Position numbers and translations under genes: made by a program. Below the pieces are notes generated by a model. The model was not told where the DNA came from, made no database searches, and saw only the letters and a program-made list of their open reading frames with translations. DNA of 64,000 bases from the NCBI GenBank assembly GCA_002811645.1, contig PDIP01000077.1:1-64000 (forward strand), read 5' to 3'. Of the stretch, positions 1 to 7,163 are shown piece after piece. The stretch is from Corallochytrium limacisporum Hawaii. Lineage: Eukaryota > Protista > Pluriformea. Numbering within the stretch: the first letter of the stretch is position 1; each line of letters begins with the position of its first letter.

Positions 1-42
1 ACCCTAACCCTAACCCTAACCCTAACCCTAACCCTAACCCTA
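1..42. repeat. Telomeric repeat (CCCTAA)n, left chromosome end
   Basis: Six perfect CCCTAA units at 2-37, then CCCTAG, at the very start of the window; C-rich strand at the 5' end as expected for a TTAGGG telomere. Confidence 0.95.
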
Positions 43-59
43 GGTCTGCTCTAATTCGT

Positions 60-1670
60 TTATTTTTTGACCTGGGGTATGAACTCACCCAAAGTCGTCG
101 TACTCGGACTGAAATGTACACGCCATTGAGAGTCTTTGAGTCCCAGATCTTGCCGGTAATCCGCAATTAGTTTCCATTCTCTTTCTGAATGATAGAAGTT
201 GCAGAACAATGGCTGAAATGAATCAAGTTGATTCCCACTTTGTTGCACACATCTTTGACGGGTACACTCTAGAGCTTTGAAATTTGGGTTCACCAACAAC
301 ATGTCCGGAAGTCTGTGTAGTTTTGTACAGTTGTCAAGGCTACAGTCCATGAGAAAGATACAGAAGTTGAAAAACTGTCCCGCTACCTTCGTATTCTTTG
401 TGCGATGCTTTGCAGTATCATATGTGACAAGCTTGCAAAACTTTTTCTTCAGATTGTAAAATGTGGAGACTTTCGCAACGATATCCTGTGGGTCAATCAC
501 CCCGCGAGTACAAATTTTGTTGTTCTGTGGATTCACTGTGAGTCCGGTCCCGCCTGATTCTGAAACCATAAAAGCTGAACTGTCATTGGAAGAACTCGTG
601 TCATTACCATTCATCTTCAATGGTGTTGTTCGAGAATCATACTCGATGTTGGGAACCTCACGATCTAAATCTTGCCCGCTGTTCAATGCGTACAATGATC
701 TCTGCTTAGCCTCCTTGACGAGTGCAGCATTCAAGCTTCTGAAGAAACTGATATCGTAAAGGGACATCAGGAAGTTTATGAAGTCCTGTTCGCTCTCAGA
801 ATGAAAGGCGGCGCATGATACCGATGCTGAACACAACGGGCCTTTGTCGCATTTATCATGTTTGTACTCAGGGTGTAGGTAGAGCAGATCGGCGAGGGTC
901 TCCACTCTTTCTCTTCCCTTTGTCCGGACCAATTCGCAGCGATTGGCCTCAAACTGCATACCGCCCAGGTCGGAGACGCCACAGTATAGCTGAATTCCCT
1001 TGTTCTGAAGCATTGAATACAACATGATTCTGGGACTCGCATTATTACTCTTCCTAGTGTATACCACTGGGTGTTGCAGAATGTATTCCAAACTAAACAC
1101 AAGACCTCTAATATCCTCAAGGAACCTTAGCAAGGAAGTTGGAATAGTTACCTCTTCGGAATGTACCGCCGCATTTCGAAGTCTTCGGAGGAGATCGATT
1201 ACATTAATGATTTCCTGAAAGGACGTATACATTTGGCGGCTGGTCTCGTAGTTGTCAGTTTGGGCTGTCAGTAGCAGCTCTTTCATCCATAAGAGAACGT
1301 TAACGACAGTAGGTCTTTGGTCTGTATTCTTTCGATCTTGCAACCAGTCGGTGAATATGTCGTCAATCACACCCGTCATTCGCGAGTCCAGATGATTGGA
1401 CAAGAGAGGATAGAAAGTGCGGTATTTGTTCTCCAGATGTGATGTCCAAAACTCAACACAAGCGTCAAGTAGAGGATTTGTCGAGGTATAGAGCTTGTCA
1501 TCCACATGGAGATCATTCTTCAATGTTCTGTCAATGTTCCTCAGAAACTCATACACACCTTTCCCAAAATCACGAAACGCCGTTGAAGACAACTGATGCG
1601 ACTGCGCTAAAAGCTTAGAAATGACGTCTACAGCATCGTTCTTCTCATCCTCGGTACGCAGGTACAACAT
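60..1670 (-). CDS. 536-aa protein with HEPN-like domain (RxxxxH) and Unkempt-like CCCH zinc fingers; putative RNA-binding ribonuclease
   Basis: Long ORF, caaacATG start with an in-frame stop just upstream. IDLLRRLRNAAVHS lies in a helical context (motif at nt 1161-1178). CCCH-like modules: LHPEYKHDKCDKGPLCSASVSCAAFHSE, CIFLMDCSLDNCTKLH, FKALECTRQRC..FCNFYHSE. Confidence 0.7.
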   Translation of the reverse strand: MLYLRTEDEKNDAVDVISKLLAQSHQLSSTAFRDFGKGVYEFLRNIDRTLKNDLHVDDKLYTSTNPLLDACVEFWTSHLENKYRTFYPLLSNHLDSRMTGVIDDIFTDWLQDRKNTDQRPTVVNVLLWMKELLLTAQTDNYETSRQMYTSFQEIINVIDLLRRLRNAAVHSEEVTIPTSLLRFLEDIRGLVFSLEYILQHPVVYTRKSNNASPRIMLYSMLQNKGIQLYCGVSDLGGMQFEANRCELVRTKGRERVETLADLLYLHPEYKHDKCDKGPLCSASVSCAAFHSESEQDFINFLMSLYDISFFRSLNAALVKEAKQRSLYALNSGQDLDREVPNIEYDSRTTPLKMNGNDTSSSNDSSAFMVSESGGTGLTVNPQNNKICTRGVIDPQDIVAKVSTFYNLKKKFCKLVTYDTAKHRTKNTKVAGQFFNFCIFLMDCSLDNCTKLHRLPDMLLVNPNFKALECTRQRCVQQSGNQLDSFQPLFCNFYHSEREWKLIADYRQDLGLKDSQWRVHFSPSTTTLGEFIPQVKK

Positions 1671-2977
1671 GTTTGTACGCTCTTATCGCCAACTGGGAAT
1701 TTGACTATGGCTAACTTCCTGGCGAAGGATTTCCACCTAGATACCCCGTTATGGCCGCCGGTTGAGACGGGGTCTGATGATTGGCCCCGCTTGTTGTTGT
1801 GTGACGTTTGTGACCAAAATTCCACGCACTCCTTTCGAAAAAACGGAAGGAAAAAAGGAATCCCGATGGCGATCCGAGCTGAGGTCAGATGTGACATACG
1901 GCGGTCCTAACATCTTGGCATGCTTAGGTATAGTAAAGGGATCGTCATTAGTGGGCCCGTGCCATTGAAAAATGAACCCTAATACTTTAGAGCCTCCAGT
2001 AGCCAATTGAAGGGGGCTGGTCAGGTTCATCGAAAACTTGAGAGACCGGCCGGCAGAACATGACGGCCAGAATAACTTATGCTGTGTAGTTGCTGCATTG
2101 TGCCAGATTCACCAAGCGAAGGGGGAAGACGGCTCAGGAGCTGAAATGATATTTCTCTAACATCTAGTGCACCATCGTAACCCGTATTGTTGACTACGCG
2201 CCTCGTACATGTCGAAAACATGATATGATTCCCACAAAATAGAGGACATCCTCTCGTCCAAAGGAGCAAGACGATATGTGCTTTGTTTCTCTTGCGTGGA
2301 ACCTTTGAAATATCCCGTTAACCCCTTGCCACCCACCACTGCTGCAAAGAACGTCGTGAGTATTTATGTATGTAAACCCGAAGACTTAGGGGTACAGTTG
2401 GAAGAAAATGAAACTAAAAGCGAATGACAAACAAATATAAATATAGATAAAGGGAGACGTTTATGTCGCTAAGGGGTGGGTGACTGTTGATAGGTGTATT
2501 TTAACTGTCCTTGGTTGAAGAAAAGGCCACCCTCCCTAGGTCCTCCTGTCGACGGAGAGGTAAAAGTGGGTCAGCCCCCCAATCCTCGTTTTCTGTGTAA
2601 CCATTTCACGTGTGGAGACGGGGTGGAGAATTTGAAACTAAATACACACTCGCGAAGCACGGAGTCTCCGACTCTTCGCTGTAGAGAAACTGTTGTTTGC
2701 GGTCTTAGTGTTGTACATGGTGATCTTTGCACACCGTGGTAATCCTAGCCCATGATTTATCGATATCGGAAACCTTTGAAACAACATCTTAGTACTCTAC
2801 AGAAATCTGGAGACATTGTGTAAGTTAGAAAGGGCCCAACAACGCGGGGGTTTGCGTGTCCATCAACTGTGGATCAATGGATGACGAATAGATCCGCCTC
2901 GAATGCCGAGTCCATACCATCATCGGCAGAAAACTTGCGCAGTTACAACAAAGAGTGCGGACAGTGTACATGAGACG

Positions 2978-3390
2978 GTGCGTGCAGTCTTGATCAGTGG
3001 GTACGTGGTCAGCTAACAAGAGTTGCTGCGTGCTGCTGACACCAATGTTATGGTATGCCAGTTGTACGTTTCTGTTTTCTGTTTACGTCAAGGGTATGGT
3101 GCGCTAGTGTGTATGAACGAGTATGTGCACTTCAAGTCAGTGGGTGTGTACACTGGACGTCAATGGGTGTGCCGGTTGACATCTATGGGTTTGTGCAGTT
3201 TAATCATTGGATGTGTGCACTTGACATCAGTGGGTATGGCAGTTTGCGTCTATTGGCGTGTGCAGTTTTCAAGAATGTTGTGGATGGTTTGCACTTGTGG
3301 TTGCGAGCATTTTATATCAATAACTAGGCGCAGCTGACCAGAGTGGACGTGTACAACTTACATCCAACGGCGTACATGCAGTTTTCACCC
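2978..3390. repeat. Degenerate 22-23 bp subtelomeric tandem repeat (approximate consensus GTGTGTGCAGTTGACATCAATGG)
   Basis: Consecutive units at 3121-3256: gtatgtgcacttcaagtcagtgg, gtgtgtacactggacgtcaatgg, gtgtgccggttgacatctatgg, gtttgtgcagtttaatcattgg, atgtgtgcacttgacatcagtgg, gtatggcagtttgcgtctattgg; more decayed copies on both sides. Confidence 0.75.
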
Positions 3391-5024
3391 TTCGCTTACA
3401 CGATCGCCGCTGCCAGTGTGTCTCCAGTGGATGGTTTTGTTCGGTTTTGGAAGCTAAAGAAACCAAATTCGGAAAGCGGCTCATCTAGAGGTATCCCCGC
3501 TGATCATCCGCGTTAATTGTGGACTCATAGGTGTTGCGGGTACCGTACCAGCTTATTCATTAATGAAGGTTACTTGGGATCTGATCCATTCGCATGTTTC
3601 GCATGGGTTCGTGAGTCTTTAGGAGTATACTTCTGAATACCGGGGCGGGGGGCTACCTGGATTTGCCCCAAGGGACTGTAAGCTGCCTGAACATATGTGT
3701 GTGAAGGAATTTGTCCAGTACAATTTTCCTATGTAAATAGACATACCGCGCGCACAGTATATGTGACACCACCTCGGTTATCCATGCTATCGAAAAAGTT
3801 TTTGCGGAGCTGGCCCGAAATCCCGTAAGCAATATTTAAGTGCCCACGCAGTTCCTGGTAATCACATCCGCCAGAACGACCTCCATTGGTTCTTTGTTGC
3901 CCACTGCATCGGTGTTTGCAATTTGAGCATTTATCCTAAGAAACTCGCCTTTTATTGGTTACAGCGGTCTTGGGAGTCACTTAGGCATCTCTGCGGTGGG
4001 TTTGGACATGGTTTCAGCGAGGGTGTAAGAGAGCACCATCTTGCGGCGGCTAATGGTTCCGAGGGAACCTACACAGTCACTAGTGAACGCAGATAAAAGA
4101 ATTGCCGATGTGTAAATGCCCCAAACTGCTTTACAAACTGCTTTACAAATTTTGCACAGCCAGAACGCATCCACGAGGACGTCCTTCATTCACCCCGGGA
4201 CTATTACCCTGTGTTTTTCCAAGATACCTTTACAGACGGCTGGCTTTATCCGGTTTTCATAGTCATTCTTTCCCATGGAGAGCAGAAACAATGGTCGGTG
4301 CTACTTAATTTTCCCTAGAACTTTGTCCACATTTCTCTGCGACCTTCGCCTGCATGCGTGGGGGGAAAATAGTTAGGGTGGTATCTGTTCAGAAATCGAT
4401 TGTCGCAGTACGGTCCCCAGGCAGAACCGAATCTCGCGAACTCTGGCGCGGAGTGAACAACCGGAGCAAAGAATTGGAACTTATCGCAGGGTCGCGGTTT
4501 GGGACACCCAATTGAGAGAAAAGAGGAGTGGTTCAATGACGTATTCGACCGGCAGGGGGCGGACGAACTGAAGGAAGTTCTGCCCTGCTGGAAATGGTGC
4601 CGGTTCGAGAAGTTTGGGGTTAGACCCCCGAAGCGAGAACTGACTGCACCCTTTGTCAAAACCTAAGCAGCAACGAAGACACACATCATCTGCCACATAA
4701 ATGCAACCTGGGTAGTAAAGTACACGTCGCAGGAACAGCGACCTTTCCCCCCACCCGGGGGGGAAGAAAGGAAGGGCCGGGGCCGGGGGAAAGGGAGAAC
4801 GAAACTGTCTGAATTGCCGGTGGATCAAAGAACGACGCCTGAGATTTCCTGGATGATGCTTGCTGTACAATGTGCTGAAATTTTGAAGCACCACACTATA
4901 GTTGTAATAATTTAAGTTACACACAGTAGGGTATTTAACGATCATGTCCATTCAGAAAGAGGATTCGAAGGTGAAGCAGCAATCGAACAGTCTAATCAGA
5001 GTCACAACGAACAAAATATCAACA

Positions 5025-5387
5025 ATGTCGACTGGTTATTGCGAATGCATTTGCACGGGAAAGACCTTGAGAATTCCTACCAGTGTCGTATCAACTCCCG
5101 CTGGCTGCAACTATGAAGCCTGCAACCGCCAATTTTCGGTTATGTGTAACATACCTACCAGTACCATAGTTAGGTGGGAGGGGCCTCAGCCGGCTCACAG
5201 CGACGACGGCCTGTCCGATGGTGCTATTGCCGGCATCGTCGTGGCTTCGGTTGTTGCGTTGCTCTTATTGATCCTCTTGACATGGTACTGTTGCTGCCGA
5301 AAGAGCAACACTGCTGCTAAGGCGAACGCCCAGAAGCTCGATGAAATGAACGAACCTGAGCCAACCCAAATGCTTGCCGCAGCATGA
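5025..5387 (+). CDS. Small single-pass membrane protein with Cys-rich N-terminus
   Basis: caacaATG at 5025 (the ORF track starts at 4944). TM segment GLSDGAIAGIVVASVVALLLLILLTWY is followed by CCCRK (stop-transfer/palmitoylation-like). Confidence 0.7.
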   Translation: MSTGYCECICTGKTLRIPTSVVSTPAGCNYEACNRQFSVMCNIPTSTIVRWEGPQPAHSDDGLSDGAIAGIVVASVVALLLLILLTWYCCCRKSNTAAKANAQKLDEMNEPEPTQMLAAA

Positions 5388-6014
5388 GCAACAAGCCAGC
5401 CAAATTGGCCAGCCCCAGTGTCGATAATGTGAAACGCCCAGCAGCACAGAAATTGAATGCTCCTCCTGTGCCTACGAACAGGTGTGACGGCCGATCCTAG
5501 ACAAGCTGCCCCAAAATTTAATCAACGTCCGTTATTTTAGTGTGCCCTGTGGAACATATGCACCGAGGGCAATGCATTGTGCAAACATCCGATAAAGAAT
5601 TTGAAGAATGCCTACAAAGTCTCGAGTACCGTGTGATTTATGAGATCTTGTAAGAACTAGGGTAAATCTTGACATCCGCATCAAATAGCTATTCGCTTTC
5701 TGTATTGACAAGAAATTTCAAGCGTGATCACAAACAAGGCCAGGCAAGGATTGAATGGTCGAAAGATGTTCGAATTATATGGCGCTTTCGTAGTTGGTGG
5801 CTTGGGGAGTTGACACGGTGGTCACGCTGCCAGTGGCAAGCATCGTCCCCGCAAAAAAGGAACATTCAAGGGATCAGGACAACAAAGAGCTGGAGAATTT
5901 TGAGTTCCTCTAAAGTCCCCACAATCCTATGCAGCAACCTCGCAACACTCGGGATACCCATGACTGTGAGATCGTAGAACCCTATTTGTAGGCCATGGTG
6001 CGGTGTTTTCCGTC

Positions 6015-7163
6015 TTATGGTCTCTCATTGAGAGTGTTTGGACATTTGGTCAACACATTTCCCCCCGCAAACGACCTGACATTCGACAGGGTTGTCTCCG
6101 CGATGGCATGTAGAGCATCAGTGGTGAGAAATGCTTGGTGCGACGTCACAATCACATTGTTGAAAGTCAAAAGACGTGCGAGTGTGTCATCTTGAATCGT
6201 TTTCTGGCCACTGAGATCCCTGAAGAAATACTCCGCTTCATCCTCGTATACATCTAAGGCAGCTCCTCCTAGCTTATCCTCTTTGAGCGCCCTTATTAAT
6301 GCATTTGTGTCTACAAGGCCGCCACGGCTAGTATTGATCAAGATTGCAGTTGGCTTCATGATCTCCAACGCATTATAGTTGATGATATGTCGAGTTTCTC
6401 CGGGAATAAGAGGTAGATGCAATGACACTACATCTGAGTTCCGTAATAGTTCGTCAGGCTCAACATAGGTGACAAAGGAATTGAGAGATTCCTCCGGATA
6501 CTTGTCATAGGCGAGCACCCTCATACCAAACCCATGACAAATGTGGGCAAAACATTGGCCAATTTTTCCGGTGCCCATCACCCCAACGGTACGTCCACGT
6601 AGTTCAAAGCCCACAAGTCCATTCAAGGAGAAGTTACCGTACTTGACCCTGTTGACCGCAATATGCATATGTCGATTCAAAGACAGTGTACAAGTCATGG
6701 CATACTCTGCAACAGCATGAGGGCTATATGCTGGTACGTTGGAAACCGTCATTAGGTGTTTGTCTGCCGCCATGAGATCTACGTTATTGTACCCGGCACA
6801 CCTTAGTGCTATCATGTTCACCCCTGCCAATTTGAGGTCGCTAATAGTTCTTTCATCACACCGATCGTTCACAAAGACACAGACCACATCATATCCCTCA
6901 GCTTCCGAAACATTGTGTCTGTTCAGCTCAATAGGTCGGTAATCTATGGAAACGGGACAATCTGCACATTGAGTCTTCTTGACGTTCTCGAAACTTGTTT
7001 GCTCGTATTCCTGGGTTGAGAACATCACCATTCTGGTGTGCTCACCGTTGGTTCCGAAATTTCGCCATTGTGTTGACCCCGAAAGCCCTCGTCGATTCAG
7101 GCTCAAACGGTATACAGTAGAAAACCATGAACAGTTGCCACTCCTTCGCAACGGTGCCAACAT
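6015..7163 (-). CDS. ldhA: D-lactate dehydrogenase (LdhA-type D-2-hydroxyacid dehydrogenase) with probable mitochondrial presequence
   Basis: Motifs ALRCAGYNNVDL, VPAYSPHAVAE, GVMGTGKIG, INTSRGGLVD, LDVYEDE, VTSHQAFLT; first 40 aa are Arg/Ser-rich with no acidic residue. Confidence 0.9.
   Translation of the reverse strand: MLAPLRRSGNCSWFSTVYRLSLNRRGLSGSTQWRNFGTNGEHTRMVMFSTQEYEQTSFENVKKTQCADCPVSIDYRPIELNRHNVSEAEGYDVVCVFVNDRCDERTISDLKLAGVNMIALRCAGYNNVDLMAADKHLMTVSNVPAYSPHAVAEYAMTCTLSLNRHMHIAVNRVKYGNFSLNGLVGFELRGRTVGVMGTGKIGQCFAHICHGFGMRVLAYDKYPEESLNSFVTYVEPDELLRNSDVVSLHLPLIPGETRHIINYNALEIMKPTAILINTSRGGLVDTNALIRALKEDKLGGAALDVYEDEAEYFFRDLSGQKTIQDDTLARLLTFNNVIVTSHQAFLTTDALHAIAETTLSNVRSFAGGNVLTKCPNTLNERP

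Follow-up and report, generated by a model that had tools for sequence, protein, structure and literature searches.

A telomere-adjacent orphan gene of Corallochytrium limacisporum with three CCCH-type zinc-finger modules and a HEPN-like motif

The closest described systems are CCCH zinc-finger proteins and HEPN RNases. Cleavage by the latter is metal-independent and yields 2′,3′-cyclic phosphate ends. In plant TZF proteins, the tandem fingers are separated by 16 residues, and the second finger is spaced C-x5-C-x4-C-x3-H. Regnase-1 (ZC3H12A) pairs a PIN-like RNase with one CCCH finger. A survey of HEPN domains describes the motif Rx4-6H, in which the Arg is directly followed by a polar residue (N, D, or H), and helix 2 of the fold often carries Ex3[KR] with a conserved acidic residue (PMC3710099). 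In KEN domains, the Asn after the Arg contributes to catalysis, and some proteins fuse KEN domains to CCCH fingers (PMC3710099), while Roquin (RC3H1/2) has the order RING-HEPN/ROQ-CCCH, with ROQ interrupting the HEPN domain (PMC4614863). The original prediction for the locus studied here, a ribonuclease with a HEPN-like motif and Unkempt-type CCCH fingers, treated that architecture as undescribed; as a class, this is wrong, given the precedents of Roquin and the KEN–CCCH proteins.

The locus lies at the start of contig PDIP01000077.1 of C. limacisporum Hawaii, in a 64,000-nt stretch that was analyzed whole (hereafter, the window). The contig opens with a (CCCTAA)n telomere repeat, which was found at nine contig ends of the same assembly. 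Reading the sequence directly, we located an intact 536-aa ORF on the minus strand (window 60–1670), 17 nt from the repeat; it is the last gene before the chromosome end, as had been proposed. The gene-level features, in window coordinates, are as follows.

1–42, plus strand: telomere repeat (CCCTAA)n, read directly; chromosome end and contig start.
43–59, minus strand: 3′ untranslated stretch, 17 nt of unique sequence from the stop codon to the telomere repeat; the contig from another strain ends at base 44.
59–64, minus strand: poly(A)-signal-like hexamer (reverse complement AATAAA), a candidate signal by sequence, overlapping the TAA stop codon.
60–1670, minus strand: intronless coding sequence, 536 aa plus stop codon (60–62); a second strain has the frame open as well, and the start, MLYLR, is as in the annotated paralogue.
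44–1680, minus strand: extent of a single 1,637-nt contig of sequencing run X1, a probable mRNA, which puts the 5′ UTR at 10 nt or more.

Run X1 comes from the other strain and is transcriptome-like (13.5 Mb, 10,617 records), although its RNA nature is only a guess. One contig in it matches the gene, its ends falling exactly at window 44 and 1680, and window 1681–5000 has no coverage in this run. We regard transcription of the telomere-adjacent gene as probable but unproven, because the X1 record does not state that the material is RNA. The gene contig is absent from a second run with the same species label. Bases 1–42, the telomere repeat, were left out of the comparisons with sequencing runs, as TTAGGG is the unit of human telomeres too. 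Between the X1 contig and the window there are 17 differing positions, 10 synonymous and 7 non-synonymous, a clear synonymous excess given that 21.5% of sites are expected to be synonymous (binomial P = 0.0009). The ORF is a real gene, intact and under purifying selection.

A full-length, intact paralogue is 46% identical to the protein (dN about 0.48, dS saturated). Searching the genome of the same organism with profiles A1 and A2 returned only these two copies and a pseudogene fragment, C84, and each of the three is less than 4 kb from the end of a contig. The idea of a gene family tied to telomeres in general was dropped, because the other eight telomeric contig ends of the assembly carry unrelated genes or sequence. 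The 536-aa protein is itself missing from the public protein collection, and when 1.84 billion representative proteins were searched exhaustively with the two-copy profile (hmmsearch), the paralogue was the only hit. Word-index searches with the whole protein and with an N-terminal profile (E ≤ 10) found no relatives; feature searches of the ESM Atlas with the whole protein and with aa 1–205 were blank, as were searches of NCBIfam and PADLOC. Sequence and profile searches of the Protein Data Bank (PDB) gave no relatives beyond a sub-threshold match to Unkempt finger 4. The family is thus a well-documented orphan, restricted to C. limacisporum. The G+C content of the gene is 0.44, compared with 0.52–0.54 for its neighbors; a foreign or viral origin was dropped, as the family has no relatives anywhere and the drop in G+C is mild and common to the next subtelomeric gene.

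The C-terminal part of the protein, from the central segment onward, comprises the following features.

885–1055, minus strand: conserved central segment, aa 206–262, with predicted β strands, running into finger 1 (paralogue comparison, AlphaFold).
801–866, minus strand: CCCH module 1, C274-x5-C280-x5-C286-x3-H290, with a YK-x3-C lead-in (YKHDK); ligands kept in the paralogue.
486–680, minus strand: linker, aa 331–395, rich in Ser/Asn/Gly/Asp/Thr, poorly conserved and with indels; without secondary structure in the AlphaFold model.
315–362, minus strand: CCCH module 2, C437-x5-C443-x4-C448-x3-H452; the paralogue has x7 between the first two Cys.
189–281, minus strand: CCCH module 3, C469-x4-C474-x15-C490-x3-H494, with an FK-x3-C lead-in (FKALE); starts 16 residues past H452 and therefore forms a tandem pair with module 2.

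The predicted presence of three CCCH-like modules, two of them introduced by (Y/F)K-x3-C, was borne out. All 12 Cys/His ligands are invariant in the paralogue. Overall, 11 of 14 Cys are conserved between the two proteins, including all nine finger Cys, and only 3 of 13 His, which are exactly H290, H452, and H494 (chance of 1 in 286). When the protein's own residues were shuffled, 0.01% of the shuffles contained at least two strict CCCH modules and 0.04% contained at least three loose ones. The strict form, C-x(n)-C-x(4-6)-C-x3-H, is seen in modules 1 and 2; module 3 conforms only if its 15-residue loop is allowed. The finger pattern is far beyond chance, and from the sequence a zinc-finger identity is well supported.

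Assigning these fingers to a described family is a different matter. No Pfam CCCH model scores above its cut-off in the gene, which is also not among the 13 matches of a genome scan with PF00642, and the spacings C-x5-C-x5-C-x3-H and C-x4-C-x15-C-x3-H are atypical. The only Pfam and PDB matches of finger 1 are to Unkempt finger 4, and they are below threshold and at noise level (Pfam E = 0.056–0.16; PDB 5elk, E = 4.6). The Unkempt model PF23035 reaches 12–13 bits in the gene against a cut-off of 27; other places in this genome score 13–15 bits, and at E ≤ 10 the model also matched three control genomes, bacterial or archaeal, below threshold. The lead-in, HPEYKHDKC, is similar to NYKTEPC and HPEIYKSTKC of Unkempt, and the spacing of Unkempt finger 4, C-x6-C-x5-C-x3-H, differs from that of module 1 by one residue. 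However, Unkempt has six CCCH fingers, in two triplets, and a C-terminal RING, whereas this protein has three, with no triplets and no RING match. The label "Unkempt-type" therefore describes a resemblance, not membership, and as a family assignment it does not hold. An unfiltered hmmsearch with the family profile covered the open frames at 16 loci of the same genome, namely the 13 PF00642 matches, two sub-threshold PF23035 matches, and one weak match to profile A2. As the best hit reached only E of about 1, descent from the genome's own canonical CCCH or Unkempt-like genes is not supported.

There is also a likeness to TTP/TIS11 and the plant RR-TZF proteins, which share the [Y/F]K-x3-C lead-in before the first Cys, the C-x3-H ending, the H-x3-E tail, an aromatic residue just before the His, and an arrangement of two tandem fingers with a 16-residue spacer. 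Module 2 is spaced exactly like finger 2 of plant TZF proteins. Departures from these families include the 15-residue loop between the second and third Cys of module 3, Pfam CCCH scores that all fall below cut-off, the placement of module 1 alone and 150 residues upstream of the pair, and an N-terminal domain unrelated to anything in them. That domain contains the HEPN-like motif.

1056–1670, minus strand: N-terminal domain, aa 1–205, predicted all-helical (AlphaFold, low confidence), 52% identical to the paralogue; relatives not found.
1419–1433, minus strand: E80-N-K-Y-R84 (Ex3R), invariant between the copies, in predicted helix 66–93; weak evidence, since helices often carry such motifs and the assignment of this helix is itself uncertain.
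1161–1187, minus strand: RRLRNAAVH, aa 162–170, a HEPN-like RNx3H running from the end of predicted helix 141–168 into a loop (sequence, AlphaFold).

The RRLRNAAVH motif sits where the original prediction had it, and its numbering of R165 and H170 is correct; R165-N166-A-A-V-H170 conforms to Rx4-6H with a polar residue right after the Arg. The proposal of a helical N-terminal half agrees with two separate AlphaFold runs, which both make it all-helical, but their confidence is low (pLDDT of 31 over the full length and 43.6 for aa 1–205). The fold check by AlphaFold and Foldseek that had been suggested returned only generic helical bundles from this low-confidence N-terminal model, both with Foldseek against the PDB and with VIA-align wide. 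Taken alone, the motif is not beyond chance, because shuffles of the protein's own residues contain Rx4H in 55% and Rx4-6H in 91% of cases; the narrower RNx3H appears in 4.7%. Conservation of the Arg and His in homologues, which active HEPN families should show, had been set beforehand as a check, with loss counting against a HEPN RNase. RRLRN, and with it R165, is invariant in the paralogue, and H170 is kept in the second strain, but the paralogue, which is the one intact homologue, has Tyr in place of this His, and the C84 fragment has Asn.

Profile comparisons gave a similarly confined signal. The Pfam KEN model (Ribonuc_2-5A) matches 21 residues of the protein, aa 155–175 (E = 0.057), where its 14 bits fall short of the 23.3 cut-off, and it has no match in the paralogue. 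Since this match is confined to the motif, it is not independent of it. With the same model, the genuine Ire1 of this organism, encoded on another contig, reaches 102.7 bits. An hhalign comparison with the KEN domain of this Ire1 gave a probability of 0.6% over 16 columns; the KEN side of that test was a single sequence, because a word search for KEN-domain relatives of the organism's Ire1 found Ire1 alone. No HEPN family in Pfam reaches threshold in the gene, and searches for HEPN in PADLOC, NCBIfam, and PDB profiles were blank. The claim of a HEPN RNase is not established: the His is replaced in homologues, no HEPN family reaches threshold, and the motif is within chance. The targeted cleavage and the defence role proposed along with it are conjectural.

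An active nuclease, as originally proposed, is one alternative. Under this reading, R165, N166, and H170 would be catalytic, the domain would probably dimerize, the CCCH fingers would select RNAs, and the Tyr-bearing paralogue would be an inactive or regulatory partner. The polar residue after the Arg is typical of HEPN domains (PMC3710099), and RRLRN is invariant between the copies. Both AlphaFold models put the motif where a long helix gives way to a loop that precedes a final helix, and the survey places it at the end of helix 3 (PMC3710099). The invariant E80-x3-R84 occupies an earlier predicted helix, and between it and the motif helix is a predicted helical hairpin, at a position where HEPN inserts are common. 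As in KEN RNases such as Ire1 and RNase L, the motif has an LLR-x-x-RN-x3-H context with Asn after the Arg; the organism's Ire1 reads LLRAIRNKRNHY against LLRRLRNAAVHS at this point, and the weak Pfam KEN match falls here as well. RNA-binding fingers in the same chain would suit an RNase, as the KEN–CCCH proteins and Roquin illustrate, and the joining of a nuclease domain to a CCCH finger, the principle originally proposed, is that of Regnase-1. Against this stand the Tyr and Asn at position 170, the frequency of RNx3H in shuffles of a gene that was chosen for the motif, a KEN match that is below cut-off and no wider than the motif, the negligible hhalign probability, and the lack of a PADLOC match. 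The similarity to KEN RNases spans just 16–21 residues and the kinase domain is absent here; in Regnase-1, the nuclease fold is a different one (PIN-like), sequence relation is none, and the nuclease here is putative. We consider it unlikely that the copy in the window joins an active HEPN-type endoribonuclease to three RNA-binding CCCH fingers. The history that would go with such an enzyme is equally doubtful, with the family born in the Corallochytrium lineage, the old His-to-Tyr paralogue perhaps an inactive heterodimer partner, and both copies at fast-turnover chromosome or contig ends.

The same placement of the motif and layout of helices could reflect a HEPN-type fold that is non-catalytic, as in Roquin or Swt1, and that aids RNA or partner binding together with the CCCH fingers. 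That the paralogue lost the His but kept the Arg and Asn speaks more for a role in structure or binding than for catalysis. Roquin, an RNA-binding protein of the animal lineage, likewise places a helical HEPN-type domain before a CCCH finger (PMC4614863). Pfam finds neither RING nor ROQ in either copy, and no sequence similarity to Roquin exists. The HEPN domain of Roquin is non-catalytic and lacks the motif, whereas here the motif is present and the HEPN fold only putative. With low-pLDDT models that match generic bundles and a profile signal that never extends past the motif, we find this reading improbable. The fingers themselves might bind zinc and yet have DNA, telomeric or otherwise, or a partner protein as their target, and the position of the gene, last before the telomere, might then bear on function; the contig-end location of all three copies and the atypical, sub-cut-off finger spacings are in keeping with this. 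The lead-ins, the C-x3-H endings, and the aromatics before the His are nonetheless those of RNA-binding CCCH fingers, and the unrelated genes at the other eight telomeric ends argue against a telomeric role, so that a target other than RNA appears quite improbable. Finally, absence from the public protein collection, a G+C content below that of the neighbors, and a subtelomeric position would be expected of a chance or decaying frame without function. This is strongly disfavored, and we judge it very improbable, as 536 codons are open in two strains with synonymous change in excess, the paralogue is intact over its full length, and the X1 contig matches the gene bounds exactly.

On balance, we think that this genuine, apparently transcribed gene, restricted to C. 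limacisporum, most likely encodes an RNA-binding zinc-finger protein. It would contain three CCCH-type zinc knuckles, one after the central segment and a tandem pair near the C-terminus, with a presumably disordered Ser/Asn-rich linker between the two finger-bearing parts. Two knuckles have both the Y/F-K-x3-C lead-in and the H-x3-E tail of TTP/Unkempt-type fingers. Each knuckle would hold one zinc ion, and its aromatic residues may contact a few bases of single-stranded RNA. The helical N-terminal domain of about 200 residues would be the effector or partner-binding part of the RNA-binding protein. Its RNx3H and upstream Ex3R, apparently placed as in HEPN domains, offer a lead only. Any HEPN-type cleavage would be limited to the window copy, because the paralogue lacks the histidine. 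The binding of zinc and of RNA, like any catalysis, is inferred.

If the fingers bind RNA, the gene would encode a regulator of RNA specific to its lineage, in a protist that is among the unicellular organisms closest to animals, and it would indicate that CCCH modules with TTP/Unkempt-like lead-ins have been built into new proteins outside animals. If a HEPN domain were proven, the protein would be a further self-targeting RNase architecture, this one from a holozoan protist and with its nuclease on the same chain as the CCCH fingers, and it would bear on the origin of animal RNA-decay and antiviral effectors. The case also illustrates that a HEPN domain cannot be deduced from a motif as short as Rx4H. 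Of practical value is a real gene that is seemingly absent from public annotation; its paralogue is annotated in EukProt as Clim_evm1s60.

We regard the window gene as a modestly interesting orphan, a CCCH zinc-finger protein variant whose helical N-terminal domain is unclassified. The original prediction of a telomere-terminal gene carrying an RxxxxH motif and three CCCH modules was confirmed, with the stop codon separated from the (CCCTAA) repeat by only 17 nt of unique sequence. Since the window opens with seven CCCTAA units, it begins at a chromosome end. The features of the gene, of its relatives in this assembly (G000), and of the organism's true Ire1 are as follows.

Window 1-42: telomere repeat of seven CCCTAA units at the start of the contig, read directly
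Window 59-64: AATAAA hexamer, overlapping the TAA stop codon of the window gene
Window 1670 to 63, minus strand: uninterrupted ORF of 536 codons, TAA stop at 60-62
Protein aa 162-170: RRLRNAAVH motif
Finger 1: YKHDK-C274-x5-C280-x5-C286-x3-H290
Finger 2: C437-x5-C443-x4-C448-x3-H452
Finger 3: FKALE-C469-x4-C474-x15-C490-x3-H494, beginning 16 residues past finger 2
G000:C60:386-2122: full-length, intact paralogue, 46% identical to the window protein
G000:C84:78244-78397 (locus L003, about 1479-1630): relic of 126 nt with an in-frame TGA, covering aa 163-203
G000:C239:45090-48458 (locus L004): true Ire1 of the organism (P0002, 922 aa, Clim_evm12s207)

Two findings show that the window gene is real: a matching contig of a second strain and the full-length paralogue. 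The contig comes from X1, a public 2015 sequencing run labelled as this species, whose 13.5 Mb in 10,617 contigs look like a transcriptome in size and shape and not like the 24-Mb genome. A single 1,637-nt X1 contig covers the whole of window 44-1680, reaching from the telomere junction to a point 10 nt 5' of the ATG, and no X1 contig covers the next 3.3 kb (window 1681-5000). Contig ends at both gene boundaries, beside an uncovered flank, are as expected for an mRNA; the run record makes no statement about RNA. This contig has 17 differences from the window, and therefore derives from another strain, and its reading frame is uninterrupted. The differences split into ten synonymous and seven non-synonymous changes, with synonymous sites making up 21.5% of the total (binomial P = 0.0009 for 10/17), and none alters R165, N166, H170, or a finger ligand. 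In X2, another run of 2015 under this species label but of a different sample and study, no contig covered the window gene when window 43-5000 was compared, which could reflect differing expression, presence of the gene in some isolates and not in others, or a filter artefact.

The three CCCH-type modules are present as originally proposed, and at least two strict CCCH patterns arise in 0.01% of shuffles of the window protein. The strongest evidence for zinc fingers is ligand conservation: the paralogue keeps 9/9 finger cysteines despite 46% overall identity, and the only histidines it keeps, three out of 13, are those of the fingers (a 1 in 286 chance). RNA-binding fingers of the TTP/Unkempt type are also matched in the lead-ins (HPEYK-x3-C and NFK-x3-C, the latter FKTAVC in the paralogue), in the H-S-E-x-E tails, and in the aromatic residue preceding the histidine of fingers 1 and 3. 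Read as family membership, the label "Unkempt-type" did not hold. The Unkempt fourth finger is the sole match of finger 1 in both Pfam and PDB, at noise level (12-13 bits vs a Pfam cut-off of 27; PDB E = 4.6). With the same Pfam model, other places in this genome reach 13-15 bits, and three bacterial or archaeal control genomes have sub-threshold matches at E ≤ 10. The canonical CCCH model has 13 matches genome-wide and none in the window gene, and the family profile showed no link to 16 loci comprising these matches and three weak-match loci from other searches. In our reading, the modules are probably CCCH-type zinc knuckles in an atypical form particular to this family, and not members of the Unkempt family; as a kind, the zinc-finger interpretation is well supported.

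The N-terminal half was originally read as a HEPN-like RNase. A HEPN survey places the Rx4-6H motif at the close of helix 3, entering the loop before helix 4, with a polar residue after the motif arginine; helix 2 often has an acidic residue within Ex3[KR], and helical inserts are frequent between it and helix 3 (PMC3710099). In the window protein, N166 directly follows R165, and in two AlphaFold runs the motif lies at the close of a predicted helix (141-168) that gives way to a loop and then a helix at 178-199. E80-x3-R84, invariant between the copies, falls in predicted helix 66-93, and two shorter predicted helices lie between this helix and the motif helix. The AlphaFold models themselves are unusable (pLDDT 31 and 43.6). 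Queried alone, the N-terminal domain weakly matched the Pfam KEN RNase domain of Ire1/RNase L (E = 0.057) over 21 residues, below its cut-off; the paralogue had no KEN match in Pfam. As a positive control for HEPN-domain detection in this genome, the true Ire1 scored 102.7 bits for its KEN domain, and its motif region reads LLRAIRNKRNHY vs LLRRLRNAAVHS in the window protein. Aligned to this KEN domain with hhalign, the window protein matched over 16 columns at a probability of 0.6%, and searches for HEPN families with PADLOC, NCBIfam, and PDB profiles were blank.

The gene was chosen because of its motif; Rx4H occurs in 55% of shuffles of the window protein and RNx3H in 4.7%. None of the HEPN-like features stands apart from the motif or carries enough weight to serve as support. 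The most important point against the reading is the catalytic histidine: R and N are kept in both the sole intact homologue and the C84 relic, and H170 is Tyr in the former and Asn in the latter. The original prediction had listed a lack of R/H conservation in homologues among the outcomes that would refute it. We consider a HEPN fold of the N-terminal domain possible but doubtful, and an active RNase in the window copy unlikely. The HEPN RNase reading remains a tentative lead that histidine loss in the paralogue weakens, and the proposed role in defence is entirely speculative.

Regnase-1 is the textbook combination of a nuclease and a CCCH finger in one chain, with a different nuclease fold. 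The original prediction recognised no described family of this architecture, but as a class it is known: Roquin unites a RING, a ROQ-split HEPN domain, and a CCCH finger (PMC4614863), and KEN domains are fused to CCCH in some proteins (PMC3710099). The window protein falls in none of these families and shows no signal for a RING, ROQ, kinase, or PIN domain.

Searched exhaustively with the family profile, 1.84 billion representative proteins returned the paralogue only. Word-index searches with the whole protein and the N-terminal domain, as well as ESM Atlas searches, were blank, and the organism's own genome, searched by profile, yielded no further relatives, so that the family appears confined to this lineage. 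Because the exact protein is absent from a 15-billion-protein public collection, public annotation seems to lack the window gene; the paralogue is annotated in EukProt (Clim_evm1s60), in line with a genome of Corallochytrium limacisporum, a unicellular relative of animals.

The window gene and the paralogue differ by a dN of ~0.48 with saturated dS, and therefore represent an old duplication of which both copies were kept. The relic shares 90% DNA identity with the window gene, and the sole DNA-level match of the paralogue to the window gene is 66% identity over 312 nt; the relic, which adjoins a multi-pass membrane-protein ORF, derives from the lineage of the window copy and not from the paralogue. 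None of the three copies is more than 4 kb from a contig end: the window copy 17 nt from the telomere, the C60 copy 386 nt from a contig start without telomere repeat, and the C84 relic 3.6 kb from a contig end. Across the assembly (24.1 Mb, 286 contigs), CCCTAA repeats occur at nine contig ends, each with unique sequence directly after the repeats. The other eight (L005-L012, on contigs C99, C262, C274, C7, C43, C75, C92, and C263) carry unrelated genes and no common subtelomeric repeat. The family is therefore end-associated and not a general telomere element.

The 3' end of the window gene looks like it abuts a healed chromosome break. The repeat starts approximately where poly(A) cleavage would be expected, and the other-strain contig stops at base 44 and does not enter the repeat. 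At the telomeric ends, ORFs often begin or finish 60-500 nt from the repeat (e.g., 60 nt on C274). On its other side, the window gene is separated from the next long ORF (6015-7163) by 4.3 kb (window 1681-6000) with no ORF of at least 250 aa and a G+C content of 0.45-0.49, below that of the rest of the window.
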